Source: Mobula birostris (taxonomy: Eukaryota). From it: DNA of 64,000 nucleotides. Made by a program: the position numbers and the translations under genes. The stretch lies in the NCBI RefSeq assembly GCF_030028105.1, contig NC_092375.1:43995130-44059129 (forward strand), read 5' to 3'. This document shows positions 3,850 to 43,656 of the stretch, one piece after another; the stretch's first letter is position 1; every line of letters begins with the position of its first letter. Below the pieces are notes generated by a model. That model was not told where the DNA came from. It did not search any database and saw nothing but the letters and a program-made list of their open reading frames with translations.

Positions 3850-5240
3850 GCAAAATACTGGAGATGGTCAAGCAACAACTATGGAAATGAATAAACAGTA
3901 GGTATTCCAGGCCGAGAATCTTCTTCCAGACTGGAAAGTAAGGGGGGGCGATGCCTGAATAAAATGGTAGGGGGAGGGAGAAGAAGGATTAAGCTGGAAG
4001 GTATAGGTGAAGCCAAATGAATGGGAACAATAAAGAGCTGGAGAAGAAGGAATCTGACAGGAGAGGAGAATGGACTATGGGAGAAAGAGAAAAAGGAGGG
4101 GCATCGGGGGGAGATGATATACAGGTGAGGAGAAGAGGTAAGAGGCCAGAGTAAGGAATAGGAGAAGAGGGAAGGGGGAGGTGAAATTTTACTGTAAGGA
4201 GAAATTGATGGTCATGCCATCCTAGATGGAATATGAGGTGTGCTCCTCCACCCTGAGGGTGGTCTCATCATGGCAAAATGAGGAAGCCATGCACTGACAT
4301 GTCAGAATGGGAATAGGGATAGAAATTAAAATGGTTGGCCACCGGGAAATTCCAATTTTAGCAGATAGAGTGGAGGTGCTTGACAAAGCGTTCCCCCAAT
4401 TTATCTCGGGTTTCAGCAATGTAGAGGAGGCCGCATCAGGAGCACTGTATACAATAGATGACCCCAGCAGGATGGATGGGGGAGGAAGGGAGCAATACAG
4501 ATATGTTAGGTGGTAGGATCCTATTGAAGATGGTGGAAATTTTGGAGAATGATGTGTTGAATACGGAGGCTCATGAGGTAGTAGTTGAGGACAAGAGGCA
4601 CTTAATCCCTGTTAAGGTGGTGGGAAGATGGAGCGAGTGTGGATGTACAGGAAATGGAGATGTAGGTGAAGGTAGCATCAATGGTGGAAGAAGGGAAACC
4701 TTGCTCTTTGAAAAAGAGAACATCTCAAGAGTTACTCTTGTCTTCATCCCATGAGACTCCGCATCCAAGACGTCATTCTCCACATATTCCACCATCTTCA
4801 ACCAGCAAACCAAAACAGATCTTTATCTCTCCTCATTCTCCACTCTTCACAGGGAGCATCCTTTCGTCCCTCTCCACTAAGTTCCCTCTTAGCACATGTC
4901 CCTGCAAATGACAAATGTTACACCTGTCCATTCACCTCATCCCATACCTCTATTCAGGTCCCCAAGCAGTTCCTTTGGGCGAGGCAACACTTCACCCGTG
5001 AATCTGTTGAGGTCATCTATATTATCCAAAGTTCACCTAGCACATTCTAGCCAATCCTCCTTACCTTCCCCCCCACTTTCTTATTCTGATAATCTTCCCC
5101 CCCACATCCAGTCCTGCAATAGAGTCTCAGCCCGAAATGTTGACTGTTTATTCATTTCCATTGAAGCTACCTGACCTGCTGTGTTTCTCCAGCATTTTGT
5201 GGGTGTTGCTCCAGATTTCCAGGATCTGCAGAATCTTTTG
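3850..5240. mobile_element. Penelope-like element remnant (GIY-YIG endonuclease), two inverted halves
   Basis: Plus ORF 4751-5050 contains KCYTCPFTSSHTSIQ..RQHFT..SVEVIYII, the GIY-YIG N-terminal signature. The minus segment near 4200-4420 encodes the C-terminal DETTLRVEEHTSY region. Orientation switches at about 4740. Confidence 0.7.
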
Positions 5241-5630
5241 TATTTATAAATTCCTAATACATGTAAACGTATATGGAGAATAAAGTTGAAGCTCAATCCT
5301 TGATTGGTTAGTCTACTATTTGAAAGGCTAGTTAGTCTACTTTTCAGAAGTATTTGGGGAGCCTTTGTATTTGATATAAAAAAATGTAACTTTTAGGAGT
5401 GAAAACTTCGCAATATACAAGCACAAATTTCAAAACCTTGCAAGACATACCTCTGTTTTGGGTTTAGAAGAATTTCTCAACACAAATGAAATAACACAAG
5501 AGCAGGACAAATAAACTGTAGCGGAGGATTGTCAATAAGTAATGCAAATTGGTTCCTATTTCTGGAATACAATAGATAAATGATCAGTCAGCATGTTTAG
5601 TATTTTGACATTCCATGTTGTTACAACCTA

Positions 5631-6156
5631 CACTCAGAAGCCACTCCATTAGGTGCACGTACACTTGCACATTAATGCAAGTATCTAATCAGCCAATCGT
5701 GTGGCAGCAACTCAATGAATAAAAGCAGACATACATGGCCAAGAGATTCAGTTGTTGTTCAGACTAAACATCAGAAGGGGAAAGAAATGTGACTTTGACC
5801 CTGTTGATGCGAGACGGGGTAGTTTGGGTATTTCAGAAACTGCTGGTCTGCTGGGATTTTCACACACAAGTCTCTAGAGTTTACAAAGAATGGTGAAAAG
5901 GAGAATCCAGCGAGTGGCAGTTCTGTGAGTAAAAATGCCTTCTTAATGAGAGAGTTCAGAGGAGGATGGCTAGACTGGTTCAAGCTGACGGGGTGGTGAC
6001 AGTAATTCAGATAACCACACGTTATAACAGTGGGGTGCAGGAGAGCATCCCTGAATACACAACATGTCAAACCTTGAGGTGGAGGAGACCAGGAACATAA
6101 ACTCAGTGACTACTTTATTAGGTACAAGAGGTACATAATGATGTGACCACTGAGTG
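5631..6156 (+). mobile_element. Internally deleted Tc1-like DNA transposon
   Basis: Termini TA|CACTCAG ... CTGAGTG|TA; interior is a decayed Tc1 paired-like HTH region (ggtatttcagaaactgctggtctgctgggattttcacacac). Confidence 0.75.
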
Positions 6157-6159
6157 TAC

Positions 6160-8990
6160 AGTCAGCCTTGATCATATCCTAATTGGAAGAGGGTCATAAG
6201 TATACGTACTGACATGGATAGAAAATTGGTTGGCAGACAGGCCCCCAACCAATACATAACTCTACTCTCCCCTCCTACCCTCCTCACAGCCCCCCACCCT
6301 GCTCTCATGACTACACCCCTTCCCCACATGAAACCACCACGGTGGGCTTCACAGCTGAACAGGTGAGAAGACAATTGAAACGTATCCATCCAAGCAAGGC
6401 TACAGGCCTGGATGGTGTCAGCACCGGGGTGCTCAAAGCCTGTGCTCCCCAGCTATGTGGAGTACTCCACCATGTCTTCAACCTGAGCCTGAGTCTCCAG
6501 AGGGTTCCTGTGCTGTGGAAGACGTCCTGGCTCGTCCCTGTGCCGAAGACGCTGCGTCCCAGTGGCTTCAATGACTACAGACCGGTAGCATTGACCTCCC
6601 ACATCATGAAGACCCCGGAGAGGCTTGTTCTAGAGCAGCTCTGGCCTGTGGTTAGACCACACTTAGATCCCCTCCAGTTCGCCTACCAGCCCCGACTAGG
6701 AGTTGAGGATGCCATCGTCTTCCTGCTGAATCCTGTCTATGTCCACCTGGACAAGCCAGCGAGCACTGTGAGGGTCATGTTTTTTGACTTCTCCAGTGCG
6801 TTCAACACCATCCGCCCTGCTCTGCTGGGGGAGAAGCTGACAGCGATGCATGTGGATGCTTCCCTGGTATCATGGATTCTTGATTACCTGACTGGCAGAC
6901 CACAGTACGTGTGCTTGCAACACTGTGTGTCAGACAGAGTGGTCAGCAGCACTGGGGCTCCACAGGAGACTGTCTTCTCTCCCTTTCTCTTCACCATTTA
7001 CACCTCAGACTTCAACTACTACACAGAGTCTTGCCATCTTCAGAAGTTTTCTGATGACTCTGCCATAGTTGGATGAATCAGCAAGGGAGATGAGGCTGAG
7101 TACAAGGCTACGGTGGGAAACTTGTGTCACATGGTGTGAGCAGAATTATCTGCAGCTTAATGTGAAAAAGACTAAGGAGCTGGTGGTGGACCTGAGGAGG
7201 GCTAAGGCACCAGTGAGCCCTGTTTCCATCCAAGGGGTCAGTGTGGACATGGTGGAGGATTACAAATGCCTGGGAATAAGAATTGACAATAAACTGGACT
7301 GGTCAAAGAACCCTGAGGCAGTCTACAAGAAGGGTCAGAGCCGTCTCTATTTCCTGAGGAGACTGAGGTCCTTTACCATCTGTCAGATGATGCTGAGGAT
7401 GTTCTACGGGTCTGTGGTGGCCAGTGCTATCAGGTTTGCAGTTGTGTGCTGGGGCAGCAGGCTGAGGGTAGCAGACACCAACAGAATCAACAAACTCATT
7501 TGTAAGGCCAGTGATGTTGTGGGGATGGAACTGGACTCTCTGACGGTGGTGTCTGAAAAGAGGATGTTGTCCAAGTTGCCTGCCATCTTGGTCAATGTCT
7601 CCCATCCTCTACATAATGTACTGGTTGGGCACAGGAGTACATTCAGCCAGAGACTCATTCCACCGAGATGCAACACTGAGCATCATAGGAAGTCATTCCT
7701 GCCTGTGGCTATCAAACTATACAACTCCTTCCTTGGAGGTCAGACACCCTGAGCCAATAGTCTGGTCCTGGACTTATTTCCATCTGGCATAATTTACATA
7801 TTATTATTTAATTATTTATGGTTTTATATTGCTATATTTATACTCTACTCTTGGTTGGTGCAACTGTAACGAAATCCAATTTCCCTCGGGATCAATAAAG
7901 TATGTCTATTTGTTTATCTATCTGTCTATGAAACAAAGAGTAGGGATTAATGGGTCCTTTTCAGAACGGCAAGCAGTGACTAGTGGGGTACTGCAAGGCT
8001 TGGTGCTGGGACGGCAGCTATTTACAATATACATTAATGATTTAGATGAAGGAATTAAAAGCAACATTAGCAAATTTGCAGATGACACAAAGCTGGGTGG
8101 CAGTGTGAAATGTGAGGAGGATGTTATGAGAATGCAGGGTGACTTGGACAGGTTGGGTGAGGGGGCAGATGCAGTTTAATGTGCATAAATGTGAGGTTTT
8201 CCACTTTGGTGGCAAGAACAGGAAAGTAGATTACTATCTGAATGGTGTCAAGTTCGGAAAAGGGGAAGTACAACGAGATCTAGGGGTCCTTCTTCATCAG
8301 TCACTGAAAGTAAGCATGCAGATACAGCAGGCAGTGAAGAAAGCTAATGGCATGTTGGCCTTCATAAGAAAGGGAGTTGACTATAGGAGCAAAGAGGTCC
8401 TTCTGCAGTTGTACAGGGCCCTCATGAGGCCACACCTGGAGTATTGTGTACAGTTTTGGTCTCCAATTTGAAGAAGGACATTCTAGCTATTGAGGGAGTG
8501 CAGCGTAGGTTCACGAGGTTAATTCCCAGGATGTTGGGACTGTCATATGTTGAAAGATTGGGGCGACTGCGTTTGTATACACGGGAATTTAGAAGGATGA
8601 GAGGGTATCTGATTGAAACATATAAGACTATTAAGGGATTGGACACACTAGAGGCAGGAAACATGTTCCCAATGTTGGGGGAGTCCAGAACCAGAGGCCA
8701 CAGTTTAAGAGTAAGGGGTAGACCATTTAGAACGGAGTTGAGGAAAAACTTCTTCACACAGAGGGTTGTGGTTCTGTGGAATGCTCTGCCTCAGAAGGCA
8801 GTGGAGGCCAATTCTCTGGATTCTTTCCAGAAAGAGTTAGATAGAGCTCTTAAAGATAGTGGAGTCAAGGGATATGGGGAGAAGGCAGGAAAAGTGTACT
8901 GATTGTGGATGATCAGCCATGATCACAGTGAATGGTGGTGCTGGCTTGAAGGGCTGAATGGCCTACTCCTACACCTATTGTCTATATCAT
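6160..8990 (+). mobile_element. 5'-truncated CR1 LINE (RT to 3' tail), interrupted by a Rex1 element
   Basis: WIENWLADR (to about 6241) continues as KQRVGING at 7930; ORFs contain [15 protein letters not shown] and LEYCVQFWSP; CR1 3' UTR up to about 8990. Confidence 0.9.
6242..7929 (+). mobile_element. Rex1/Babar-type LINE, 5'-truncated, RT with frameshift
   Basis: ORFs 6342-7076 (KATGLDGV, DYRPVALTS, FFDFSSAFNTI, KFSDDS) and 7069-7752; 3' tail gggatcaataaagtatgtctat. Confidence 0.9.
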
Positions 8991-10164
8991 GAGTCATTAT
9001 TGTTTAATTGGACCAAAATCTCACATAGTAAATACGAAAACACAATTTTCAGGCTACGTTGAGGGTATTTCCCTCATTGTCTTGAGTTTGGAGATATTTT
9101 CTTTCAAAGCCTGTGAGTTCTATTTCTTCTTTCCATATCACAAATATTCCTGCAAGTTCCCAGTCATCTAATGTTTTTTGTGGGGATATTTGGGCAGTGG
9201 AGTGAGCCAAAATGGTAAAATGTAAAAATATACCATTGAGAACTTCATCCTCTGGAATAAAGTCTGTTAAAAAAAAAGAAATAGAATCATTAATTATTTA
9301 GAAATAAACTTACAGTAATAAGTATTTGACAGGCTTGATCATTGCCAGGATTTTCATTTCAGCACTGAATTCACCAGCTTTTACTCCTTGTGTTAGAACT
9401 GGCCGATTCTGATGTGCAGACATCTGCTTCAACTCCACTTATATCTCTCAGCAGATGCAGCTTGGTCTGCTGGGTCTTTTAACGATGCAGATTTCCACAC
9501 AAGATGTCCTTTGCCTCCAAAAGACCCAGCACAGTATTTGTTTCCTATTCTTTCTCTCCTTATTTTCCATCGTTCTCCCATTATTAAACCACTCAGAAAG
9601 CATTGAATGACTTGCATACCCTTGGTCTCTACTATTTCACGGATGTTCTCTCTACCCACCCCTACTCTCAGATTTAAAACATACTTGTCTTCCAACTTCT
9701 CTGGTTCTCTCTGCAGAATCCAATCTGGCCTACTGAGCATTTCCGGCATTTTCTGTTACTACGTGGATTTCATTATTGTGGTAAATGCAGGAGAGTTTGA
9801 TACTGCATGTTCACACTAACAGTCTTAAGCTGATCTTTCAAACAAAAATAAAACTACAAGCTAGATAATTGATATTGGACACAAGACAAACTATAGTTTT
9901 GAAGAAAGAACAAATGCAGTTTCAGCTGGATAATAATGCAGCTCAGAAGTATCTCTACCACTTAGGTCATACTCAATTGAATTTGTAAATTCGATTGCCA
10001 CTAGGTGAAAATCCCCACTAACTGCACAATCGGAGTCCCTTCACGAGAAGGTTCAGACTGCCTGGACATAACCTTCTCATGAGCACTTAAAGGACGGGTA
10101 ACCATTGCCGATCTTTCTGGAAACCCATATCCTGATTTTGATAAACAACACCGAAAGATCAGAT

Positions 10165-13100
10165 TAGAAACATAGAAAACCTACAGCACAGTACAGGTCC
10201 TTCAGCTCACAGTGCTGTGCCGAACATGTACTTACTTTAGAAATTACCTAGGGTTACCCATAGCCCTCTATTTTTCTAAGCTCCATGTACCCATCCAGGA
10301 GTCTCTTAAAAGACCCTATTGTATCTGCCTCCACCACAGTCGCCAAGTACCCATTCCATGCACTCACCACAATCTGCGTAAAAAACTTACCACTGACATC
10401 CCTTCTGTACGTACTTCCAAGCACCTTAAAATTGTCCCTTCTCTATTAGTATTTTCAGCCCAGGAAAAAAGCCTCTGACTATCCACACGATCAATGCCTC
10501 TCATCATCTTATACACCTCTATCAGGACACCTCTCATCCTCCGTCGTTCCAAGGAGAAAAGGTAAATTCACTCAACCTATTCTCATAAGGCATGCTCCCC
10601 AGTCCAGGCAATATCCTTGTAAATCTCCTCTGCACCCTTTCTATAGTTTCCACATCCTTCCTGTAGTGAGGTGACCAGAATTGAGTGCAGTACTCCAAGT
10701 GGGATCTGAGCAGGGTCCTATATAGCTGTAGCATTACCTCTCGGATCTTGAACTTAATCCCACGGTAGATGAAGGCCTATACACCGTATGTCTTCGTAAC
10801 CACAAAGACAACCTGTGCAACAGCTTTGAGTGCCCTATGGACTGGGAACCCAAGATCCCTCTAATCCTCCACACAGCCAAGAGTTTTACTGTTAATACTA
10901 TATTCTGCCATCAGATTTGACCTACCAAAATTAACCACCTCACAATTATCTGGGTTGAGTTCCATCTGCTACTTCTCAGCCCAGTTTTGCATCCTATCGA
11001 TGTCCCATTGTAAACTCTTGACAGCTGTCCACACTGTCCACAGCACCCCCAACCTTTGTGTCATCTGCAAATTTACTAACCCATCCCTCCACTTCCTCAT
11101 CCAGGTCATTTACAAAAATCACAAAGAGAAGGGGTCCCAGAACAGATCCCTGAGGCACACCACTGGTCACCAGCCTCCATGCAGAATATGATCCATCTAC
11201 AACCACTCTTTGCCTTCTGTGGGCAAGCCAGTTCTGGATCCACAAAGCAAGGTTCCTTTGGATCCCATACCTCCTTCCTTTCTCCATAAGCCTTGAATGG
11301 GGTAACTTATCAAATGCCCTGCTGAAATCCATATACACTACATCTACTGTTCTACCTTCATCAATGTGTTTAGTCACATCCTCACAAAATTCAAAAAGAC
11401 TTGTAAGGCATGACCTACCTTTGACAAAGCCATGCTGACTATTCCTAATCATATTCTGCCCCTCCAAATGTTCATAAATCCTGCCTCTCAGGATCTCCTC
11501 CATCAACTTACCAACTACTGAAGTAAGACTCACTGGTCTATAACTTCCAGGGCTATCTCTACTCCCTTTCTTGAATAAGGGAACAAGCTCTGCAACCATC
11601 CAATCCTCCAGAACCTCTCCCATCCCCATGATGATGCAAAGATCATTGCAATCTCCTCCCTCGCCTCCCACAATAACCTAGGGTATATCTCATCCGGTCC
11701 CAGTGACTTAGCCAACCTGATGCTTTCCAAAAGCTCCAGCACATCCTCTTTCTTACTATCTATATGCTCAATCTTTTCAGTTCACTCTAAGTCATCCCTA
11801 CAATTGCCAATGTCTTTTTCCATAGTGAATACTGAAGCAAAAATACCTCCGTTACCTCCTCCGGTTCTATACACACTTTTTCACTGTCACATTTGATTGG
11901 TCCTATTCTTTAACATCTTATCCTCTTGCTCTTTACATACTTGTAGGATGCCTTGGGGTTTTCCTTAATCCTGCCCGCCAAGGCCTTCTCATGGACCCTT
12001 CTGGCTCTCCTAATTTCATTCTTAAGCACCATCATGACAGCCTTATAATTGTCTAGATCTCTATCATTACCTAGTTTTTTGAACCTTCCATAAGCTTTTC
12101 CTTTCTTCTTGACTAGATTTTCTACAGCCTTTGTACACTATGGGTCCTATACCCTACCATTTTTACCCTGTCTCATTGGAACGTACCTATGCAGAATGCC
12201 ATGCAAATATCCACTGAACATTTGCCACATTTCTGCCGTACATTTCCCTAATAATATCTGTTCCCAATTTATGCTTCCAAGTTCCTGCCTGAGAGCTTCA
12301 TATTTCCATCTACTCCAATTAAATGTTGTCCTAACTTGTCTGCTCCTATCCCTCTCCAATGTTATGGTAAAACAGAGAATTGTAATCACTATATCCGAAA
12401 TGCTCTCCCACTGAGAGACCTGACACCTGACCAGGTTCATTTCCCAATAACAGATCAAGTACAGCCTCTCCTCTTGTAGGCTTATCTACATATTGTATCA
12501 GGAAACCTTCCTAAAGACACCTAACGAACTCCACCCCATCTAAACCCCTTGCTCTAGGGAGATGTCAATCAATATTTGGGAAATTGAAATTTCCCACCAC
12601 AACAACCTTGTTATTATTACACCTTTCCAGAATCTGCTTCCCTATCTGCTCCTCGATGTCCCTGTTACTATTGGGTGGTCTATAAGAAAACACCCAGTAG
12701 AGTTATTGACTCTTTCCTGTTTCTAACTTCCACCCACAGTGGATCAGTAGACAGTCCCTTCATGACTTCCTCCTTTTCTGCAGCTGTAACACTATCTCTG
12801 ATCAACAGTGCAACGCCCCCACCTCTTTTGCCTCCCCCCCCCCGTTCTTTTGAAACATCTAAAGTCTGGCCCCCTAAGTAGCCATTCCTGCCTCTGAGTC
12901 ATCCAAGTCTCTGTAATGGCCTCAACATTATAGCTCCAAATACTGATCCACGCTGTAAGTTCATCTGCTCTGTTCATGATACTCCTTGCATTAAAATACA
13001 CATCTCAAACCATCAGTCTGAGTGCATCCCTTCTCTATCACCTGCCTATCCTCCCTCTCACACTGCCTACAAGCTTTCTCTATTTGTGAACCAACCACCC

Positions 13101-13950
13101 CTTCCTCGGTCTTTTCAGTTCGGTTCCCACCCTCCAGCAAATCTATTTTAAACTCTCCCCAATAGCCTTAGCAAACCTCCCTGCTTGGATATTAGTCCCC
13201 CTCGGATTCAAGTGTAACCCATCCTTATTGTGCAGATCATGCCTGTCCCAAAAGAGGTCCCAAAGCTACAGAAATCCGAATCCCTGCCCCTTGCTCCAAT
13301 CCCTCAGCACCTGAGAGGCAAATTACCATCCATGTTTCTCGCCTGCGTCCACAGAATCGTCTGTCTGACCCCCTAACTATACAGTCCCCTGTCGCTGCTG
13401 CCATTCTCTTCCTTTCTCTGCCCTTCTGAGCCACAGGGCCAGACTCTGTGCCAGAGGCGCAGCCACTATTGCTTCCCCCAGGTAGGTCCCCCCCCCAACT
13501 GTACTCAGACAGAGGTACTTATTGTCAAGGGGGTGCAGCCACAGGGGTACTCTATAGTACCTGACTCTTACCCTTCCCTCTCCCAACTGTTACCCACTTA
13601 TGTCTCCCGAGTCCCCCGTGTGACTACTTGCCTGTAGCTCCTCTCTATCACCTCCTCACTCAGATGAAAGTCATCAAACTGCATCTCCAGTTCCCTAACC
13701 CGGTCCCTAAGGAGCTGCAGCTCAACACACCTGGGGCAGATGTGGCCATCCGGGAGGCTGGGAGTCTCCCGGGCATCTCACATTCGACACCGAGAACAGA
13801 ACACCGGCCTCGCAGACATACTTCCCGTTTCTGTACTACACAAGTAACTTACCTCGCCTCGACCCGTTATCCCCGAAGCCCGGTTGAGCCAAAGCTCTCC
13901 TACTCTGGCACCCGTTCTATTAAGCTATTAGATTTGAAACTATTTCATAA
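10165..13950 (-). mobile_element. Near full-length degenerate CR1 LINE (ORF1 esterase + ORF2 EN/RT)
   Basis: Minus ORFs give GDCIVRG..MVICL (ORF1), YFNARSI..ITETW (endonuclease), [24 protein letters not shown] (RT) and LEYCTQFWSP; tail (ttctatg)n at 10165; many stops and frameshifts. Confidence 0.9.
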
Positions 13951-14029
13951 ACTTACCAGCCAGAAAAGATTCTGCAGATGCTGGAAATATTGATCAACAG
14001 CACAGAAATTAAGGGAGGAATTTGGCAAA

Positions 14030-14790
14030 TTCAAGTTTGCCAGAGCTGTTGGGGAGGATTTAAACTCATTTGGCAGGGGTAACGAGAACCGGAGGGATCG
14101 GGATGAAAATGGGGCAGTTGGTATACAAGTCGATGCAGTGTGTAATAAGAATGCGAGGAAGGACAGGCAAATGATAGGGCAAAATTACAGTCAGTGGGTG
14201 AGTTGCCCTATAACATGGAAGCAAAATCAGAAAATGTGACCAATAGAGGGCACAGCCGAAGGATGTTGGCCCAAAATGTCCACTGTACTTTTTTCCATAG
14301 ATACTGCCTGGCCAGCTGAGTTCCTCCAGCTTTTTGTATCTGTTGCTCGGGTTTCCGGCATCTGCAGATGAGGGTTAACTTATGAGGAGCGTTTGATGGC
14401 TCTGGCCCTGTACTTGCCGGAGTTTAGAAGAGGGGCGGGGGTGCGATGGGGATCTCATTGAAACGTAATGAATATCGAAAGATTTGGACAGAGTGGATGT
14501 GGAATGGAGGTTTCCTAAGGTGGGTGTGTGTAGGACCAAAGGCCACAGCCTCAAAAGAGAGGGACGTCCATTTAGAACGGAGATGAGGAGGAATTTCTTT
14601 AGCCAGTGGGTGGTGAATCTGTGAAGTCCAAGTCAAGATTATATTTAAAGAAGTTCTTGATTAGTCAGGGCGTCAAAAGTAACGGGGAAAAGACAGGATG
14701 AATGGGGTTGAGAGGGATAATAAATCAGCCACGATGTAATGGCGGAACAGACTCGATGGCGTTAATTCTGCCTCTATGTTTTTATGGTCC
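14030..14790 (+). mobile_element. CR1 fragments interleaved with Penelope-derived pieces
   Basis: CR1 inter-ORF segment (14030-14250), decayed hammerhead-family terminus (14255-14370), CR1 3' end (14370-14790). Confidence 0.65.
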
Positions 14791-15096
14791 TAAGTCAGGC
14801 GGGATCTATGGAAAGGAATGAACGGTCAACTCTTCGCGCCGAGACGCTGCATCGGGACTGCAAAGGATGGAGGCATTTATGTGCTGATCATAGACTCTTG
14901 GTTATAAGCAAGTATCACGAGGGTCGGGAACCCGGGAACGATAGAAATTAGGACACTGGCAGCGGTGATATCTAGAAAGAAAGGAGGTCATGCCTAGTTT
15001 ACAATGTGCCCTCTCGTGCTTGAAGGTAATAAAATACTAGTCTGATATGTGATTTACAAAAATTATATGGGGCTTTTAGTCGCCATTCTACCCTAC

Positions 15097-15451
15097 CTGC
15101 AACCGCAACAATCAGCTGAGTTCCGAAGCCCTGAATATTCTTGGAGAACGAAGTGATAGCGTTGCAATAATATGTCCCGCTGTCTGCAAACTCAAGGTTA
15201 TTTATTAATCGTCAAGGTGCTATTGAAACTTGAAGAATTAGTTCCAAACACACTGATGCGACCATCTCCACTCTTGGTGCTGATGTTTCTCGCGTACAAA
15301 TCACCAGAGATCTCTTTAGTAAAATGCCAATAAAAGCTACCATTTACCAACTCTCCCTTGTCTTGTAAAGTACAGCTGAAGGAGGCAGAATCCCCTACCA
15401 GCAGCCGGAGCGATCGGGGAGTTTGCTGCAAATCCAGTCCGGTGGCAGCAC
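15097..15451 (-). pseudogene. Germline-joined VJ-type Ig V-domain exon (NKp30/TMIGD2/CD28-like receptor), frameshifted in this sequence
   Basis: Acceptor tgatag|GT, donor G|GTAGGG. Peptide LDLQQTPRSLRLLVGDSASFSC..FYW..STLTIN, then in the +1 frame NLEFADSGTYYCNAITSFSKNIQGFGTQLIVAVA. Exon length 355 = 3n+1; the extra base(s) lie in ATTAATAAATAACC near 15200. Confidence 0.8.
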
Positions 15452-15556
15452 CTATCACAATACAGCTCGTTAAAGTTGCAAGTAGCAAACAGCAAACATA
15501 ATAATTACACATTAAGTGTGAACAATTGTGTGTCGCTTTGAATCTATTATACTTAC

Positions 15557-15587
15557 AGATTGCTACCAGGACCAGAATGGTGATCAT
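15557..15587 (-). CDS. Leader (signal peptide) exon MITILVLVAI of VJ-type Ig gene
   Basis: ATG at 15587, phase-1 donor T|GTAAGT at 15556. A 105-nt intron joins it to the V exon, giving MITILVLVAICAATG-LDLQQTP. Confidence 0.85.
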
Positions 15588-15759
15588 AATTTTTCTTCGA
15601 AAGGCTGAAGCTCAAGAATAACTGTTCCAAACAATTCGCTTCTATTGTCAGTTCTCGTTTCATCATTTCCTTTTTAAAGCAATGTGACTGGTCATCATCT
15701 TCTCTGACTTGGATAATTTGAATTATGTAGTAAAATCGATTTTTCTCAATACATGAGGA

Positions 15760-16015: not shown

Positions 16016-18836
16016 GTTTTATCTCTAGTTCATCGTCACAGCAACCGGTTTCCGGGACAGACCATGCTCTTAGGTGCCATGCACAAGTCACTGACGGGGA
16101 GCGCAACAATCCAGCCCGTGACAGAGTCTGCACATCCTACAGGGCATTATGGAGCAACAAATGAATTGCAGGACAACCTTGGGGAGTCCAGCTTCACCTG
16201 TGGGGTGGAAGCTGTTGGTGCTTCTGGTGGAACCCCTGTATCAGTATACAGAGCCAAGGTAGTCGGTATAAAGAAGAACAAGGGAGTGGCGAGCCAGGCA
16301 GATGAGAGTGGTGGACGGGGGAAGGATAAAGGATAAAAGATTAAGCCAAATATAGAGAAAATAGGATGGAGTTAGCAGACAAAGCCAGGTGAGGGATGAC
16401 AAAAAAGGAAGATGCTGAAAGGAGGGAGAGATGGAGTGAAAAAGGACGCAGCTTCTGAAGAGAAATAACCAGGAACTCTATATCTGGTCACAACATACTG
16501 ATGCAGCTATAAAGAAAGCAAAACAGCGGCTATGTTTCTTCAGGAGTTTGCGATTTGGTTTATTACCTTTGGTCACCTAAAGCACTCGAAAACTTCTACA
16601 GATGTATCTCGGAGAGCATTCAGACTGGATGCATCACCGTCCGGTATGGGGGTGGGGGGCGGCTACTGCACAGGATCGAAGTAAGCTGCAGAGGGTTGTA
16701 AAATTAGACAGCTTCATCATGGGCACTAGCCTCCATAGTCTCCAATACATCTTCGAGGAGCGGTGCCTCACAATGGTGGCATCCATCATTAGGGACCCCG
16801 TCACCCAGGACATACCCTCTTCTCATTGTTATTATCGGGAAGGAGGTACGGAAGCAGGGGCGGCACTGAGGTGGTGCTAGCTGGGGCTATAGCCCCAGCA
16901 GAAATTGCAATAGCACCAGCGTAGCACCACCAAGAAATTAACTGAAATTTCACATACAAATTGCAGCTGCATTTATTTCTCTGTATAGTTTTGAATACAG
17001 CTTGTTTCTCCAGTTGATCAAGTGAAACGGCGCCCCCAATTACCATAGCACCCACGCAGCAATAAAATTATAAACTCTATCAGATCCACTCTACACTTCT
17101 GCTTATTTGTTCCTTGTCAATGTCTCGCCGTTGCTGCGCTCAGATCAGTTAGGCTGATCTAAGATCACTTAAGGTGGTGATGTCACTCACTCTCACTCAC
17201 GCGTTGATAGTATACATCCAGTCGCAGATCCGTGGTCTCGCGAACTAACGGATCCCCCCCCCACCCCCGCCACCCCCCCACACACACAGTGCTTTTGCAA
17301 GCGAGCGTCAACCTCGCACGTGTATTATTTTGGCCGGCGTGAAAAATGGATCAACTTTTAGTGAGAAAACGACCTCCTCCAGAGGAATCAGTGGTGTCTC
17401 AGCCTGAGCATATCTTAATTGAAAGTGACATGCAGAAAGTAGGGATGAAGACGACAGCAGTTCGTCGAAGGAGTGTGAGGGCGAAGCAGAGGAACAAGAA
17501 ATGGAGCGGGATTCACAAGAGAACGTGGATGAAGCTGCTCTTACTGCTGGTGGGAATACTGTTAGCGATGTTAGCCAGCAGCCTGAGGAAGGACCCCGTC
17601 GGCCAGCATTGAAAATAGTCATAGTCATACTTTATTGATCCCGAGGGAAGCACCATTCGCTGCTCGCAACAGTTTGGCAATCAGCAAGGGAGTTTTATTC
17701 GTGGCTGGTTTGACTGACTGGAATATTCGAGCACGAAAGGTACTACGTTTTGCTTCGCATGCAGGCATTACCTGTCTGGAGGACATGGGTTCTATTCTGA
17801 GTCTACCTTCACTGTCACCGGTTACCGCAACAGGCAGAAAGCTAGAACAGCTTTCAAAACCCACCATGTAAATGCAGCTCATAAGTTTGCTATGGAGGCA
17901 CGGGCCGAATTCAGATTGAGAAAACAAGCGGTTCAAGATTGGGACATAAGCTTGACAAAGGACATGCAAAGATTGTCCAAGAAAATCGTGAGTATATGAG
18001 AGCTGTGGTTGAGTCTCCAGCAAGGACAGACATTGATTGACACAGTGGAATTTCTAGCTCCAATGAGTCCCTACCGCGATGCATTTATAGATTTATACAA
18101 ATTGATCTGCATGTCACTGACTCTACCTGTGACATCTGCCTCGTGCAAACGGAGTTTCTCTTGCCTCAGACCGCTCAAAAACTACCTAAGGAATAACAGT
18201 GAAGATACTCAGAACAGCAACTTGGCCCTGTTGGCCATAAACAGGCAAAGGACCAAAGCACTTGACATCCAGAAAATCATTGATGCTTTCAGCACCAATC
18301 ACAACAGACAGATTGTGCTTCTCTGAAAACATCAATGGTGAGTGCAGTTGATTTTTTTTTAAAAATTCGGCCAAGACTAATGCTGATTATTATTATTATT
18401 TTGTGGTGGATATCCCATAGTCTTTATGTTTCCTGAAAATCCTAAACTATTACATTTACTGCTATTAAGCCTACTGGTTTTGCTTAGACTTCCAAGCAGT
18501 GATTCTGTTGATTTTTGTTTTAAATTCATTAGCCGAATTTGGCAGTTTTGGCAGTTGGTCTGTGCAATCAAGTCAATCAAGATTTGAATAGTTCAGCAGA
18601 AAGCCGTTCATTAGACAATCAAGATTTGAATAGCTCAGACTCAGCAGAAAGCAGCTGATTGGGCAATCGAAGTCAGGTGACCAAGCATTTTGAAAAGCTC
18701 AGATAAATAGAGGGGTAGATCAAGCGGAGCGGCCAGTGAGTGAGTGGGCCAGTGAAGGAGTGGAGCTTTGAGGCTTTGACACGAGAGGCTTCCACGAGAA
18801 GAGGCGGAGGACAAGCTTGATCCCGGTTATTCTTTA

Positions 18837-19673
18837 ATGTCTCCTGAGACGGTAATGTGCTTCTCATGTGGGATGTGGCAGTCTTGGGGGAACTCCCCTC
18901 TCCCGCAGAGTCACATCTGCCAGAAGTGCATATGGCTGGGCCATCTGGAAGACCATGTAAGGAATCTGGAGCAGCACCTGGATGACCTTCGACTCATAAG
19001 GGAGAATGAGGCAGTCATAGATGAGAGCTACAGGGAGGTAGTCACACCTAGGCTGTTGGAAGCAGGTCGTTGGGTGACAGTCAGAGGGGGGAAAGCGAAG
19101 GTGAGCAGACAGGTAGTGCAGAGCACCACTGTAGCCATTCCCCTGAATAATAAGTTTACCATTCTGGATACTGTTGGTGGGGTTGACCAACCAGGTGTGA
19201 GCCACGGTGGCAGGGCCTCCGGCACAGAGTCTGAGCTGGTGGAGCAGAAGCGTGGGATGGAGAAGAGGACAGCTGTTGTCATTGGAGATTCTATAGTCAG
19301 GGGAGCAGACAGGAGATTTTGTGGACGTGAGAAGGACACCTGCATGGTTTGTTGCATCCCAGGTGCCAGGGTCCGGGATGTCTCTGACTGGGTGCACGAC
19401 ATCCTGGTACGAGAGGGAAAGCAACCAGAAGTCGTGATACATGTTGGGACCGACGACATAGGCAGGAAGAGGGATGAGGTCCTGAAGTGTGAGTTTCGGG
19501 AAATAGGCAGAAGGCTGAAGAACAGGACCTCAAGGGTGGCGTTCTCAGGATTGCTGCTAGGGCTACGTGACAATGATGGTAAGAATTGGAGGAGATGGCA
19601 GTTGAATGCGTGGCTGAGGAGTTGGTGCAGGGAGCAGGATTTTAGATTTTTGGATCATTGGGATCATTTTTGA
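18837..19673 (+). CDS. CR1 ORF1 protein (zinc finger/leucine zipper + SGNH esterase), truncated
   Basis: CxxC..CxxC plus heptad leucines, then VIGDSIVRG and VIHVGTDDIG motifs; preceded by a CR1-type 5' UTR from about 18660. Confidence 0.85.
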   Translation: MSPETVMCFSCGMWQSWGNSPLPQSHICQKCIWLGHLEDHVRNLEQHLDDLRLIRENEAVIDESYREVVTPRLLEAGRWVTVRGGKAKVSRQVVQSTTVAIPLNNKFTILDTVGGVDQPGVSHGGRASGTESELVEQKRGMEKRTAVVIGDSIVRGADRRFCGREKDTCMVCCIPGARVRDVSDWVHDILVREGKQPEVVIHVGTDDIGRKRDEVLKCEFREIGRRLKNRTSRVAFSGLLLGLRDNDGKNWRRWQLNAWLRSWCREQDFRFLDHWDHF

Positions 19674-20795
19674 CTTCTGCAGTGCGTTCAACACCATCCG
19701 CCCTGCTCTGCTGGGGGAGAAGCTGACAGCGATGCAGGTGGATACTTCCCTAGTATCATGGATTCTTGATTACCTGACTGGCAGACCACAGTACATGTGC
19801 TTGCAACGCTGTGTGTCGGACAGAGTGATCAGCAGCACTGGGGCTCCACAGGGGACTGTCTTGTCTCCCTTTCTCTTCACCATTCACACCTCAGACTTCA
19901 ACTACTGCACGGAGTCTTGTCGTCTTCAGAAGTTTTCGGATGACTCTGCCATAGTTCGATGCATCAGCAAGGGAGATGAGGCTGAGAACAGGGCTATGGT
20001 AGGAAACTTTGTCACATGGTGTGAGCAGAATTATCTGCAGCTTAACGTGAAAAAGACTGAGGAGCTGGTGGTAGACCTGAGGAGAGCTAAGGTAGCAGTG
20101 ACCCCTGTTTCCATCCAGGGGGTCAGTGTGGACATGGTGGAGGTTTACAAATACCTGGGGATACGAATTGACAATAAGCTGGACTGGTCAAAGAACACTG
20201 AGGCTGTCTACAAGAAGGGCCAGAGCCGTCTCTATTTCCTGAGGAGACTGAGGTCCTTTAACATCTGCTGTACGATGCTGAGGATGTTCTACGAGTCTGT
20301 GGTGGCCAGTGCTATCATGTTTGCTGTTGTGTGCTTGGGCAGCAGGCTGAGGGTGGCAGACACCAAGAGAACCAACAAACTCATTCGTAAGGCCAGTGAT
20401 GTTGTGGGGATGGAACTGGACTCTCTCATGGTGGTGGCTGAAAAGAGGATGCTGTCTAAGTTGCATGCCATCTTGGTCAATGTCTCCCATCCACTACATA
20501 ATGTACTGGTTGGGCACAGGAGTACATTCAGCCAGAGACTCATTCCACCGAGATGCAGCACTGAGCGTCATAGGAAGTCATTACTGCCTGTGGCCATCAA
20601 ACTTTACAACTCCTCCCTTGGGGGGTCAGACATCCTGAGCCAATAGGCTGGTCCTGGACTTATTTCATAATTTACTAGCATAATTTACTTATTACTATTT
20701 AACTATATATGGTTCTATTACTATTTATTATTTATGGAGCAACTGTAACGAAAACCAATTTCCCCCGGGATTAATAAAGTATGACTATGACTATT
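19665..20795 (+). mobile_element. Rex1/Babar-type LINE, 5'-truncated, open RT 3' half
   Basis: ORF 19732-20646 is highly similar to 6342-7752; tail gggattaataaagtatgactatgactat. Confidence 0.9.
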
Positions 20796-23704: not shown

Positions 23705-25095
23705 TGTCATAAGGGGGGCGCTGGGAGCGGACCCAAATGCAAGACACAGACACTGAAGTACTAGGAACCGGACTAGAGTTAGGGACGGGACTGGATGCAG
23801 ACTAGGAGCTGGGACAAGAACACAGACTTGGGCTAGGACTTGACTAGGAAAGCGGGACCTGGACGAGGAACTAGGAACTTGGAAACTGGACAAGGGCTCC
23901 GAGCCAGAGACTGGACAAGGACGCGAAACCTGAGTCTTGACTCGGGTTCGGACCCCGGATCCAAGCAAGGAGATGACGTGGCTACAGGACTGGACGACAC
24001 ACATGGACAGGACGAGAACACAAAGCCTGACTTGGACAGGACTTGGACTAGACGAGGTTCTTGGACGTGGCCAGGACTAGACGAGGTTCTTGGACAGGAC
24101 GAGAGACTCCAGCACAGGATGAAGGAACTCCAGCACCGGGCTGGGCGAGAACACGAAACCTTGATTTGGTCGACGGAAAGACAGGAACGCAGAGCCTTGG
24201 TCGAGGGAGAGACAGGAACGCAGAGCCTTGGTCGAGGGAGAGTGGAACATGGAACACAGAGCCGGGACCCCTCCTTGGGAACAGGACGTAGGGCCAGGAC
24301 TCATACACAGAATGCAGAACATGACGAGATGTTTCTCAACACTAGGTAGCCGCAAACGGCCAGACCTACCTAGCGAAGGTGTGGACACAGAGACAGTTCA
24401 AAACAACGATAGACAGTTCCTTATTTTGCTCTGGTGGTTGAATCTGACAGTGGTGCAGGCGAGGGTTACAGGTGAAGGAAGGCTTCAGGCGAGGTTTGGT
24501 AAGGCTTCAGGCAGGGCTTAGTCATAGTCATACTTTATTAATCCCAGGGGGAAATTGGTTTTCGTTACAGTTGCACCATAAATAATAAATAGTAATAGAA
24601 CCATAAATAGTTAAATAGTAATATGTAAATTATGCCAGTAAATTATGAAATAAGTCCGCAACCAGCCTATCGGCACAGGGTGTCTGACCCTCCAAGGGCG
24701 GAGTTGTAAAGTTTGATGGCCACAGGCAGGAATGACTTCCTATGACACTCTGTGCTGCATCTTGGAGGAATGAGTCTCTGGCTGAATGTACTCCTGTGCC
24801 CACCCAGTACATTATGTAGTGGATGGGAGACATTGACCAAGATGGCCTGCAACTTAGACAGCATCCTCTTTTCAGAACCACCATGAGAGAGTCCACGGGA
24901 GGAAGGGGAGGGGAAGGGAACAGTCCAGCAAGTGAAGCTGACCCCAGGAGCTATTTATGTAGCCAGCCCAAAATCAGATTCATATGCTTCAATTAAGGCA
25001 CACAACAGGACCAGGGAAAACCGGAAAACCTGGAGTACAGATCGATGGACCGGACCATGAACCGGAATGTGGATTTTACGGACCGGACCGTGACA
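23705..25095 (-). mobile_element. Putative solo LTR (Gypsy-like), copy 1, with Rex1 3' insertion at about 24519-24895
   Basis: TGTCA...TGACA termini; homologous in inverted orientation to 25350-26890; no gag/pol; TSD not clear. Confidence 0.6.
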
Positions 25096-25349
25096 TTGTC
25101 CTCTGATTTGGGTTTCCCTTCCCAGGGAAAAGACTGCTTCCATTCCCCATTATCCATGCCTCCCATAATTTAAAATGCTTCTATAAGATTGTCTACCATT
25201 CTCTTACACTCTAAGTAATAAGGATCCAGAGTGACCAGACTTTTTTCATAACTCAGACCCTCTAGACCCAGCAATACCCTCATTTTTGTACTCTTTCCAA
25301 TTTAACTGCAGTTTTTCTATAATAAAGTGACCTAAACTGTACACCAAAC

Positions 25350-26890
25350 TGTCATGGTCGGGTCTGTGAAGCCCACTTTCCAGTTCATGGTCCGGTCCAT
25401 AGTTCCTTATTCCAGATTTTCTAGTTTTCCCTTGTCCTATTGTGTGCCTTAATTGAGGCACATGATTCTCATTTTGGGCTGGCTACATACACAGCTCCTT
25501 GGTTCAGCTTCAGTTGCTGGATTGTTCCCTTCTCTTCCTTCTGAAGCCTCGCCTGCTACCTTCGCCAGTGTCCTTGCCTATAATGTTGTCAGGTTCAACC
25601 GCCAGGGCAAGATCGGGGCCTTGCTGTGTCTAGATATGGAACTGCCTTTTGTTGTTTGGAACTGTCTCTTTGTGTCCTCGCCTTCGTTAGGTAGGTCTGG
25701 CCATTTGCCACTACCTTGTGTTGGGAACCGTGTCTGTGTCCACGCCTTTGCTAGGTAGGTCTGGCCGTTTGCCGCTACCTTGAGTGGAGATCTGTCTCTC
25801 AGTATTCTGTGTATGAGTCCCAGCCCTATGTCCTGCTCCCTAGGAGGGGTTCTGACTCTGTGTAGAGCCCCGGCCCCAAGTCCTGTTCCCAAGGAGGTGT
25901 CCCAGCTCTGTGTTCCATGTTCCTGTTCTCCCTCGACCAAGGCTCTGCGTTCCTGTTCTCCCTCAACCAAGTCAAGGTTTCGTGTTCTCGTCCTGTCCAT
26001 GTGCTTTGCCCAGCCCAGGAGTACCTCGCTCAGCCCGATGCTGGGGTTCCCTTGTCCTGTCCTGGAGTCTCATGTCCAGTCCTGTTGCCAGTACTCATCC
26101 TGTAGCCACATCTTGTCCTCACCTAGATCCAGGGTCTGAGCCCGAGTCAAGACCCAGGTTCCGGGTCCCTGTCCAGTCTCTGGCTCTGAGTCCTTGTCCA
26201 GGTTCCAAGTTCCTTGTTCCTCATCCAGGTCCCGCTTCCCTAGTCATTCGCTGCTGTTGTTACTGTACGGTCAGGAATCTTCCGGAGGGAAGGCCTCAAA
26301 ATCCCCGGCCTTGCCTGCTGTTGGCGACCGAGTTTGAGGTTGAATCGTTTGGACAGAGATGGCGCTCAGTACTCGGTGTCAGAGAGCTGATTCGGAGGCT
26401 CGAAGTTTTCGGATGACTCAGAGACGGATTGTGGTCAGGCATGGCAGGAAGAGTTTTTCTTCCTTCTCCCGTCTGCGTGAGATGTGGGACATTTGAGAGA
26501 CTTTGAACTTTTTACTGTGCTCATGGACTTCTTCATCAAGTTATGGTATTGTTGCACTGTTGTAACTATATGTTATAATTATGTGGTTTTGTTAGTTTTT
26601 TCAGTCTTGGTCTGTCCTGTGTTTTGTGATATCACACCGGAGGAAATATTGTATCATTTCTTAATGCATGCATTACTAAATGATAATAAAAGAGGACTGC
26701 ATGTCTTCATAATCATATCATCATAGTCCTAGCCCAGGCCCTGTATCCTGGCCTCGTGCAGGGCCTGTGACTTGTCCAGCGCCGTTTCTTCCCCACTTCC
26801 CTTGCTTGCTTGACTCACCTAGTCCTGTTCCTAGTACTTCAGTGTCTGTGTCTTGCACTTGTGTCCGCCATTAACGCCACCCTTGTGACA
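25350..26890 (+). mobile_element. Putative solo LTR (Gypsy-like), copy 2, with LINE 3' UTR insertion at about 26247-26724
   Basis: TGTCA...TGACA termini; 5-bp TSD CAAAC (25345-25349 and 26891-26895); interrupts a minus-strand CR1 piece. Confidence 0.7.
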
Positions 26891-30959: not shown

Positions 30960-32195
30960 GGAAAGTGAGCAGGTTCAGCTCCATCTACCAGCTTCTTGCT
31001 TGGTGCTGCCAGAGCAAGGTGTCTGCATGTGACAATTCTCTCTCTCACCCTCTCATCCGCTGCTCCCAGAGGGAGGTCCCGGCATTCAAATGGTCTCTCT
31101 CTCACCCTCTCATCCGCTGCTCCCAGAGGGAGGTCCTGGCATTCAAATGGTTTCTCTCTCACCCTCTCATCCGCTGCTCCCAGAGGGAGGTCCCTGCATT
31201 CGAATGGTCTCGCTCTCACCCTCTCATCCGCTGCTCCCAGAGGGAGGTCCCTGCATTCGAATGGTCTCTTTCTCTCACCCTCTCATCTGCTGCTCCCAGA
31301 GGGAGGTCCTGGCATTCAAATGGTCTCTCTCTCACCCTCTCATCCGCTGCTCCCAGAGGGAGGTCCCTGCATTCGAATGGTCTCGCTCTCACCCTCTCAT
31401 CCGCTGCTCCCAGAGGGAGGTCCCTGCATTCGAATGGTCTCTTTCTCTCACCCTCTCATCTGCTGCTCCCAGAGGGAGGTCCTGGCATTCAAATGGTCTC
31501 TCTCTCACCCTCTCATCCGCTGCTCCCAGAGGGAGGTCCCTGCATTCGAATGGTCTCGCTCTCACCCTCTCATCCGCTGCTCCCAGAGGGAGGTCCCTGC
31601 ATTCGAATGGTCTCTCTCTCACCCTCTCATCCGCTGCTCCCAGAGGGAGGTCCCTGCATTCGAATGGTCTTGCTCTCACCCTCTCATCCGCTGCTCCCAG
31701 AGGGAGGTCCCTGCATTCGAATGGTGTCGCTCTCCCTCTCCATCAAAGCTGCTGGGAGATGGTGCTGGCATCCTGGTCTTGGGCAAGGTTTAACTGATGC
31801 GTTTTGTGAATTGGACTCTGTAGATCACGTTACGATGTGTTCCTGGTTTCTGGTCGCACTTTTTTTGTTGCTATTTTGATTGGAGTGGACCAGCTCTGCA
31901 ACCTGAAGTTAACGGGCAACACAGAGCTGGATTGAACTGAACTGAGCTGAACTGAATATGTCTGGACTGGTTGGATGATTTGTAGTTTGGTGTTTTATAT
32001 TCTGTGTTTTCACTTGTTTTCTTTTTTGCTGTTTGTTTGATGTGTTCTTTTTTTTGCATGTTGGGAGTTTGATGTTTTTCTTTGTGTGGATCCATGGTTA
32101 TTCTTTGTTTTGTGGTTACCTGTAGGAAGACAAATCTCAGGGTTGTATATTGCACACATTCTTTGATAATAAATGTACCTTGAATCTTGAATCTT
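30960..32195 (+). mobile_element. LINE 3' UTR-type repeat hosting a minisatellite
   Basis: Ends in gataataaatgtaccttgaatcttgaatc, a short tandem tail like other LINE ends here; family not identified. Confidence 0.5.
31039..31740. repeat. 57-bp minisatellite, 12 copies, with 173-bp higher-order duplication
   Basis: Unit ctcaccctctcatccgctgctcccagagggaggtccctgcattcgaatggtctc(g/t)ct; unit starts at 31044, 31101, 31158, 31215, 31274, 31331, 31388, 31447, 31504, 31561, 31618 and 31675. Confidence 0.95.
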
Positions 32196-38868: not shown

Positions 38869-39031
38869 GTGGAGAGAAGGGAGGGGCAGACAGGGTGGAG
38901 AGAAGGAAGGGGCAGGCAGGGTGGAGAGGAGGGAGGGGCAGGCAGGGTGGAGAGAAAGGGAGGGGCAGGCAGGGTGGAGAGAAGGGAGGGACAGGCAGGG
39001 TGGAGAGGAGGGAGGGGCAGGCAGGGTGGAG
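38869..39031. repeat. 26-bp G-rich tandem repeat, about 6 copies
   Basis: Unit gtggagagaagggaggggcaggcagg. Confidence 0.9.
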
Positions 39032-39070
39032 TGGAATGTCCATGGTAGGTTGGAGACAAAAGTTGCTCAC

Positions 39071-39140
39071 GTAACAACTAACTTTTTAAAAAGGGCTGTT
39101 GGAGACAAAAAGGAAGTAAGTTGAATCAGTAAGATCCCAG
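39071..39140 (-). CDS. Candidate hydrophobic C-terminal exon of B7-like gene, (A)GILLIQLTSFLSPTALFKKLVV
   Basis: Strong acceptor cttaccctttctctctgcag, donor |GTGAGC; only the phase-1 frame is open, matching the IgC exon end. Confidence 0.45.
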
Positions 39141-39332
39141 CTGCAGAGAGAAAGGGTAAGTAAGGTTGGCCAGGGTTAAAATCTCTTCCTTTAATGTATC
39201 AAAAGAAGTAGTAACTGGTGGGAGAAATTCAACTTATGATCTGTAGACCACAAGTTCTCTGCATGTTGCTCTTTGCCTGTCTGAAATTCAAGCATCATTA
39301 AAACGGACAAGCTCCAGAGTATGAAGAGTTTA

Positions 39333-39699
39333 CAGTCATCCCTCAGTATCCGCAGGGGACTGGTTCCAGGACCACACTACCCCCCCCCCCCCCACCCCAG
39401 CTAGCCATCCCTTACTAGCCTTAAACTCCTTCCTCTCACTCACTACACAAGTAGCAAAACAAACGAGACGCAGAGTAAACAGTGCACAACTGAGTGCTGG
39501 ACAGAGACTGAGGATCTGTGAAATGGCAGAAGGCTACAGCAGGGCATATCACTTCATTCACGTGGATTCGCATAATGCTCGGTGCGCAGCAAATTCAAAT
39601 TTTGCTTTTTGGAACTTTCTGGAATTTTTTTCGAGTATTTTCAATCCACGGTTGGTTGAGTCCGCGTATGCGGAACCTGCGGATACGGAGGGCCGAATG
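39333..39699. mobile_element. Tigger/pogo-like MITE
   Basis: TA|CAGTCATCCCTCAGTATCCG ... CGGATACGGAGGGCCGAATG|TA. Confidence 0.75.
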
Positions 39700-40479
39700 T
39701 ACTCTGAATCAAGTTTAGGTAAAAGATGGACATTCCTTGTTACATTTCTCCCTTGTTACATTTCCCCCAAATTCAGCCTTAGATACATCCAACCACCGAA
39801 AGGATTTATTATAGTTAAGAAGCAATAAACTTTGGAAGTTTTGCTGCGAGCGTATGACTGTTTCGAGAAACACATCTTTTCAATTATAAATCTGATGGCT
39901 TCTCTCCATTATCCACACGGATAAGGTGTTTTCCATCTGAAAATACAAATGGGAACAAAAGTCAACATTTATTCTGCTAATACTGTGTATACATCAGCAG
40001 GGCTATCATAATGAAATAATCTTAAATTGATTGTAATTCTGTATCTTTTATTTAGCCTTAGATTATTTCATATTCAGGTTTAAAATAAGCATTGATCATT
40101 CTAAAACACAGTACAACAATTGCACTCAATTTTACACTGTGCACTTCCTCAGTTTTCTGCATTCCTACCAACAAAATCGTTACCTTACCTGAAAATTCTC
40201 AGTGATGGAAACCACTTGGTTAGTGAAAACCAGAAAACAGTTGTCAGTCATTCTGCATTACTAACAATTTCTAAAGTTTCTCATGATCTACAACCAGATA
40301 ATTGTGCCAAATTTAGTTAATCCATCTCTGCAGTACTGTATTCAAGTGGAATTATTTTCCCAAAATAGGTTCATTTGTATTTACTCAAAGTTCTATATAT
40401 GCTTAATTTAATGTACCAAGTCAAAATGGTGCCAAGCAATGATGTCTGTCAAGTTGTGGCTCAGACTTATTCCTTTGAG

Positions 40480-43568: not shown

Positions 43569-43656
43569 TATAATTTTATAAGATGTACTGATATACTTAC
43601 TGCTTATTATGTTCATTTAACACTTTCAAAAGTAACAATTTTAGAAATAAACCTAC

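Follow-up and report, generated by a model that had tools for sequence, protein, structure and literature searches.

What kind of receptor is encoded where a V-type immunoglobulin domain and a J-like strand lie already joined in the germline of the ray Mobula birostris? Non-rearranging VJ genes are reference points for the origin of antibodies and T-cell receptors, and the original prediction had read one short part of the window, that is, the whole stretch of 64,000 nucleotides analysed here, as such a gene from a cartilaginous fish, carrying a frameshift. The gene probably encodes an activating VJ receptor that needs no rearrangement and depends on an adaptor, a member of a small elasmobranch family that is linked to B7/butyrophilin (B7/BTN) genes, and it is broken in this copy. 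The general principle, a germline VJ-type, adaptor-dependent IgSF receptor, is already known; the ray member is new.

Gene anatomy and the frame break

The locus is a three-exon gene (leader, VJ, transmembrane and tail) of about 10.1 kb on the minus strand, with the following features.

15557-15587, minus strand: exon 1, 31 nt, ATG at 15587, donor gtaagt
15452-15556, minus strand: intron 1, exactly 105 nt, GT..AG, phase 1, 3' end ...gatag
15097-15451, minus strand: exon 2, 355 nt (351 + 4), phase 1 at both ends, donor gtaggg
15198-15205, minus strand: frame break, tandem ATAA·ATAA in the local sequence A-ATAA-ATAA-CC, a 4-bp duplication
15107-15133, minus strand: J-like motif QGFGTQLIV, of the GxGTxLxV type, in the same exon as YYC
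5562-15096, minus strand: intron 2, about 9.5 kb, full of retroelement remnants
5464-5561, minus strand: exon 3, acceptor ttccag, phase 1, coding for stalk, transmembrane (TM) helix and tail, with the stop TAA at 5466-5464
5147-5152, minus strand: AATAAA, a candidate polyadenylation signal by its motif alone, about 310 nt past the stop

Exon 1 codes for MITILVLVAI and the first base of a Cys codon, which make up most of the signal peptide. At the junction with exon 2, T|GT restores the Cys, and the last four residues of the signal peptide (AATG) lie within the V exon, a split leader of the form called canonical for antigen-receptor genes (PMC12227049). The intervening intron is of the short, phase-1 type usual in the leaders of antigen-receptor V genes, and its acceptor context, ...atag|GTGCTGCCAC, is also kept in the shark Chiloscyllium. 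Beyond the end of the leader, exon 2 holds an entire V-set domain, to which a J-like G strand is fused and which is spread over two reading frames. Frame A covers strands A to E, with the Cys of strand B in SFSC and the Trp of strand C in FYWH, and ends with TLTINK and a TAA; frame B continues with NNLEFADSGTYYC...QGFGTQLIVAVA up to the gtaggg donor and includes DSGTYYC. The Pfam V-set profile matches both pieces at consecutive profile positions, 1-78 (E 5e-4) and 77-108 (E 9e-6). The J-like motif reads Q-G-F-G-T and lacks the aromatic residue of the canonical FGxG, which is absent in the ray and in both sharks described below, whose counterparts at the same place in the alignment are TGTGTRLII and MGSGSHLIV. 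The leader exon, the 105-nt intron and the V exon with its Cys, Trp, DxGxYYC and QGFGTQLIV had all been predicted at these positions, and each was recovered there on the minus strand. The predicted lack of an RSS at the 3' end was likewise borne out, neither CACAGTG nor CACTGTG being present within 14900-15700. In addition, no second DxGxYxC or J-like motif occurs anywhere in the 64-kb window.

The frameshift in the V exon is real in this assembly, and its nature can be refined: it is a 4-nt insertion in the form of the tandem ATAA, not a simple slip of one nucleotide. The four extra nucleotides shift the frame and bring a TAA stop into register at 15200-15198, after strand E. When the ray exon was aligned as DNA with the 351-nt V exon of Chiloscyllium plagiosum by MAFFT, three in-frame indels and one 4-nt ray insertion were obtained; the insertion, which MAFFT placed at AATA (15206-15203), is the sole indel that is not a multiple of three. 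Since both borders of the V exon are in phase 1, the intact exon must be a multiple of three, and here it is 355 nt. If frame A up to ...TLTI is joined to frame B from NNLEF... and the extra 4 nt are left out, the translation aligns without gaps to both shark proteins, and no GT..AG mini-intron that would read through without a frameshift is found at the break. The other elements of the ray gene are intact, including all four splice sites, the Cys, the Trp, DxGxYYC, GxGT and the downstream exon with its stop. A single lesion with all else preserved therefore means that the damage is recent or that it is an assembly or allelic artefact. The broken copy is probably a very recent pseudogene or a null allele, while an assembly error is a possibility to be reckoned with, if a less probable one. 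From the assembly as it stands, the product would end after strand E and be non-functional.

The third exon, which the original prediction did not contain, was found by a hydrophobicity scan of the minus strand downstream of the V exon (YLLTILRYSLFVLLLCYFI near 5541), and it is this exon that shows what type of receptor the gene encodes. A good acceptor, ttatctattgtattccag, stands before it at 5563-5562. The final G of the V exon and the AA of exon 3 (G|AA) form a Glu at the junction, after which the exon codes for IGTNLHY, completing a stalk of eight residues, and for a 21-residue TM helix, YLLTILRYSLFVLLLCYFICV, the tail EKFF and the stop. The helix carries an Arg (codon 5523-5521) in its outer third. 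A similar end is found in the predicted protein XP_078088791.1 (P0004) of the shark Mustelus asterias, whose C-terminus reads ...VVRYILFVLLMCYFILVETFY-stop. By tblastn, the last 32 residues of P0004 match 5562-5467 of the window with 56% identity (E 4.9e-5) and with the stop at the equivalent aligned position, and the two share the TM and tail pattern RY(I/S)LFVLL(M/L)CYFI..VE.F(Y/F)-stop. AlphaFold2 predicts a confident helix at the equivalent P0004 residues, 141-170. The predicted passage from V domain directly to TM(Arg) draws its support from one Mustelus gene model and the ray window. The conceptual ray product has about 160 residues, consisting of a signal peptide, one VJ domain, the 8-residue stalk, the TM-Arg helix and a 5-residue tail. 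Four N-glycosylation sequons lie in the ray VJ domain, two of which (NGS and N-I/V-S) are kept in all three species.

Intron 2 contains reverse-transcriptase (RVT_1) ORFs at 6222-7073 (plus strand) and 10997-11677 (minus strand), and it holds neither a C1-set motif nor any additional match to the shark proteins. The C1-type motif YxCxVxH is absent from every frame of the whole window. Two candidate identities were rejected on the anatomy. A rearranging TCR or Ig V segment does not fit a gene with no heptamer in 14900-15700, a fused J, a TM exon as the next exon and no C1; a gene of the UrIg type does not fit the lack of C domains, there being no C1 motif in the window and a direct step from V to TM in the Mustelus model.

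Shark relatives and the affinity of the V domain

An exhaustive phmmer search with the first V piece against 1.84 billion representative proteins returned only two single-domain relatives, both of them shark gene predictions. XP_043556870.1 (P0002) of Chiloscyllium plagiosum, named 'T-cell surface glycoprotein CD8 beta chain-like', is 52% identical (E 3e-14), and the Mustelus protein P0004, filed as 'uncharacterized protein LOC144506486', is 47% identical (E 1e-11). The next genuine V domains in the list are TCR alpha V arrays at E ~1e-5. Other high-ranking matches were long multi-repeat proteins aligned over many short stretches (e.g. P0010, with repeats VTVTPDSA.LLVGDTVRL) and were judged compositional. 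The two shark proteins match the window by tblastn at E ~1e-23, and with this value and those of the phmmer search the VJ gene is therefore far beyond chance. Word-indexed protein searches with the ray piece, P0004 and the family alignment gave nothing past the two shark proteins.

No protein of Mobula birostris or of any other batoid, and no intact batoid copy, was among the search matches, in keeping with the earlier suggestion that the frameshift hides the gene from annotation. As to the reservation that it might be an already annotated ortholog, automatic prediction has yielded a homologue in each of two sharks, and one of the two bears a misleading name. The central claim is upheld: this cartilaginous fish carries a VJ-type Ig receptor gene that is joined in the germline and does not rearrange.

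The Chiloscyllium locus (L001) has the equivalent split-leader layout, with a leader intron of about 100 nt and a V exon of 351 nt. Between the ray and Chiloscyllium V exons, dN/dS is ~0.3, which, with dS saturated at 1.3, may be taken as a rough sign of past purifying selection. Identity between the two sharks is 49% versus 47-52% between shark and ray, and the three genes, as judged from their sequences, are homologues in a fast-evolving family and not proven 1:1 orthologues. The family is small and has so far been seen in elasmobranchs only, Chiloscyllium and Mustelus each contributing a single predicted gene. The TM(Arg) exon was not found in the Chiloscyllium locus, which has gaps at 11231-11536 and 18682-19181; it may be hidden in a gap, or the NCBI model may be wrong. 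The last exon of that model (L001 12283-12429, plus strand) codes for a non-hydrophobic tail to which nothing in the ray window or in Mustelus corresponds.

The domain is an antigen-receptor-type VJ domain. When the family profile was compared with all PDB sequences, rearranged TCR alpha VJ chains led (E 3e-10), followed by VNAR (1e-9), TCR mu and light chains. With the first V piece alone, VNAR was the best match (6e-5), the two having QTPR...C.L.D...YW.FTK in common. For comparison of folds, a first AlphaFold2 run on a 4-row alignment reached a pLDDT of 50 across the V domain and was left out; the model used was of the Mustelus V domain only, with TCR alpha V rows added, and its pLDDT of 82 is to be read with the reserve that the added rows may bias it towards TCR V. 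Its nearest neighbours were TCR alpha V, CD8 beta, Ig kappa V and CD79B in Swiss-Prot, and VNAR and TCR V alpha by Foldseek against the PDB. Among PDB chains reduced to one per 40%-identity cluster, skate VNAR came first (Z 15.1), followed by TCR beta, alpha and delta V, CD79b and CD8 alpha, in a ranking so flat that Z was still 13.1 at rank 50. An ESM Atlas feature search returned generic V-set clusters only. Structure cannot separate V families at this level.

These affinities bear on the families proposed at the outset. The suggested assignment to NKp30, TMIGD2 or the CD28 family found no backing, the nearest named relatives being TCR alpha/delta V, NAR V, CD8 and CD79b. The converse alternative, that the gene would group with rearranging TCR or Ig V segments in an antigen-receptor locus, holds for the resemblance of the V domain and fails for the locus, which contains B7/BTN genes and retroelements and no V, J or C segments. 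As to NKp30 (NCR3) in particular, the exhaustive phmmer search gave no protein named NCR3 at E 1e-3 or better. NKp30 was also absent from the best 60 PDB profile matches, the best 50 Foldseek PDB matches, the best 50 of the 40%-cluster search and the Swiss-Prot fold list, rankings that count as weak negatives and as nearest-neighbour criteria only, because TCR and Ig chains abound in the PDB and Swiss-Prot. In the list of AlphaFold DB fold clusters, an NCR3 cluster stands at rank 27 (E 5e-6, 23% identity), outranked by SIRP-like, CD7 and CD79B clusters. Membership of the V domain in NKp30 is unsupported rather than excluded.

The likeness to TCR alpha/delta V-J and shark IgNAR V extends from the profile and fold matches to the split leader, the phase-1 intron of ~100 nt, DxGxYYC and GxGTxLxV, and it raises the possibility of a secondary derivative, in which a V and J of TCR alpha/delta or NAR type fused in the germline and a TM exon later captured them. 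For such joining there is repeated precedent in shark Ig genes, and the lead of rearranged TCR alpha VJ and VNAR in the profile search, the VNAR match of the first piece, the skate VNAR and TCR V folds and a leader split as in antigen-receptor genes (PMC12227049) are what it would predict. However, V and J are contiguous in the ray germline with neither an RSS remnant nor a C exon, the TM exon follows directly, and the surroundings are those of a non-antigen-receptor locus. Moreover, in none of the three species does the J-like motif have the FGxG aromatic, identity to TCR V is just 24-30%, and the gene is common to sharks and ray, so the event would predate their split. A derivation of this sort is very improbable.

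The automatic name of the Chiloscyllium protein offers a further reading, a CD8 beta homologue, to which almost no credence can be given. CD8 beta chains do occupy ranks 2, 5, 8, 11, 12 and 20 in the Swiss-Prot fold search, and CD8B appears in the Atlas list, but identity to CD8 beta is just 20-23%, the 8-residue stalk is no long hinge and has no hinge cysteine, the TM arginine and 5-residue tail do not fit, and no CD8A-like neighbour lies in the window. CD8 beta was rejected for the missing hinge and the charged TM segment.

Neighbouring genes and the proposed mode of action

Upstream of the VJ gene and on the same strand lies a second gene of the immunoglobulin superfamily.

38100-47605, minus strand: B7/butyrophilin-type gene

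Its IgV exon lies within 47183-47605, with B7-H3, B7-H4, MOG, BTN1A1 and PD-L1 as the best PDB relatives, and its IgC exon within 43616-43960, where Pfam C2-set_3 'BTN3A2-like' matches at 7e-15 and BTN2A1 is the best PDB match. A likely TM exon lies near 38183 (WWYVQVYIAIAICCILFLRLLLKK). B7-H6 chains match the IgC exon only at E 0.03-0.09, and the neighbour, which is 22-28 kb from the VJ gene, is nearer to B7-H3, B7-H4 and BTN than to B7-H6. In Mustelus, a gene with V-set and C2-set_3 domains is located 10 kb downstream of P0004, with a TRIM-like gene upstream, so that B7/butyrophilin genes adjoin the VJ-TM(Arg) family in both a shark and the ray; no B7 exons were found within 10 kb in the Chiloscyllium locus. 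The window contains no MHC class III marker.

Receptor and ligand genes that are linked and co-evolve have their textbook case in pairs of the NKp30-B7H6 type, and the numbers of NKp30 and B7H6 genes reportedly correlate across species from sharks to mammals, an observation said to go back to Flajnik in 2012. It has to be weighed whether the ray gene is a true NKp30 orthologue or co-orthologue, part of the NKp30-B7H6 clusters known from sharks to mammals. The build is alike, with a single V-type domain, a J-like G strand in the same exon, a short stalk, a TM arginine and no ITAM, ITIM or other signalling motif of its own, and in both cases B7-family genes are nearby. Both are also prone to pseudogenisation, as most mouse strains have NCR3 as a pseudogene and its loss is thus common (PMC6514059). 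The presence of NCR3 among the AlphaFold DB fold clusters points the same way. Set against these points are the lack of any specific sequence affinity, as seen in the phmmer search and the PDB best-match lists, a neighbour that resembles BTN and B7-H3 more than B7-H6, a class III context not seen in the window, and a tail of five residues that is far shorter than that of human NKp30. On this evidence an NKp30 orthologue is unlikely.

In the preferred reading, a non-rearranging, adaptor-dependent activating receptor, the product of an intact gene would be a type I membrane protein in which the J segment lies within the V exon, so that no rearrangement would be needed. The cytoplasmic part has only five residues and no signalling motif, and therefore the protein cannot signal alone. 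The TM Arg would pair with the TM Asp of an ITAM adaptor of the FcR gamma, CD3 zeta or DAP12 type, and without this adaptor the receptor would probably neither reach the surface nor deliver an activating signal. The position of the Arg, within the helix's outer third, is that found in partners of FcR gamma and CD3 zeta. Precedents include the role of the TM arginine in NKp30 and NKp46 (PMC6514059) and the positively charged TM residue of activating NITRs, which have no ITIM and for which pairing with DAP12 is implied (PMC2442602). Because the VJ gene adjoins B7/BTN-type genes, a B7-type ligand encoded nearby is the favoured guess.

Place among non-rearranging VJ genes and other features of the window

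Several known systems share parts of this design. Activating NITRs likewise have a germline V with a J or J-like motif, a charged TM segment and no ITIM, in a rapidly diverging family (PMC2442602). However, NITRs are known from bony fish only (PMC2814043), none being known yet in cartilaginous fish (PMC6795676), many have a second I-type domain with six cysteines, their charged residue lies mid-membrane, and the likeness drawn here to the ray gene is one of architecture, no NITR sequence being among the search matches. UrIg, UrIg2 and PRARP share the non-split VJ exon together with a leader split in the canonical way, UrIg being itself from elasmobranchs, and they have come under discussion as survivors of the precursor of antigen receptors (PMC12227049, PMC10751288). 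They differ in having three to eleven C1 domains and forming disulfide-linked dimers, whereas the ray gene has no C domain and carries a TM arginine. With its one domain, the ray gene may also be set beside those of an amphibian. The XMIV genes of the Xenopus MHC are MHC-linked, VJ-type single-V receptors with activating forms, which have a charged TM segment, and inhibitory forms; they differ from the ray gene in being amphibian.

The locus adds an unannotated ray member and unites two shark predictions, one of them misnamed CD8 beta-like, in a VJ-TM(Arg) family. A bolder and improbable proposal is that this elasmobranch family represents one more line of non-rearranging antigen-receptor-type VJ genes to have survived, the third with NCR3 and UrIg/UrIg2, in the form of a bare, B7/BTN-linked VJ-TM(Arg) receptor whose V domain is nearer to TCR alpha/delta and NAR V than that of NCR3 is. 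If so, the gene would be a candidate relative of the membrane-bound VJ gene that was split by the RAG transposon, and the antigen-receptor precursor would be tied to B7-type ligands.

Repeats and mobile elements lie elsewhere in the window. In a LINE-type element at 18780-20643 (plus strand), a reverse-transcriptase ORF comes after a first ORF that bears a GDSL/SGNH lipase-esterase-like domain (E 6.5e-9). At 31037-31734 a 57-bp unit is repeated in 12 copies (93% matches) as a minisatellite that is open in several frames on both strands. An L1-like retroelement occupies 53738-59450 (plus strand), in which an ORF1-like ORF, with sub-threshold Pfam matches only, is followed by ORFs with an endonuclease/exonuclease/phosphatase domain and then by more long ORFs. 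Finally, 23705-26890 is a large nested palindrome centred near 25220, composed of six inverted-repeat pairs (65-189 nt, 79-87% complementary), with long, mirror-image, low-complexity ORFs on both strands.
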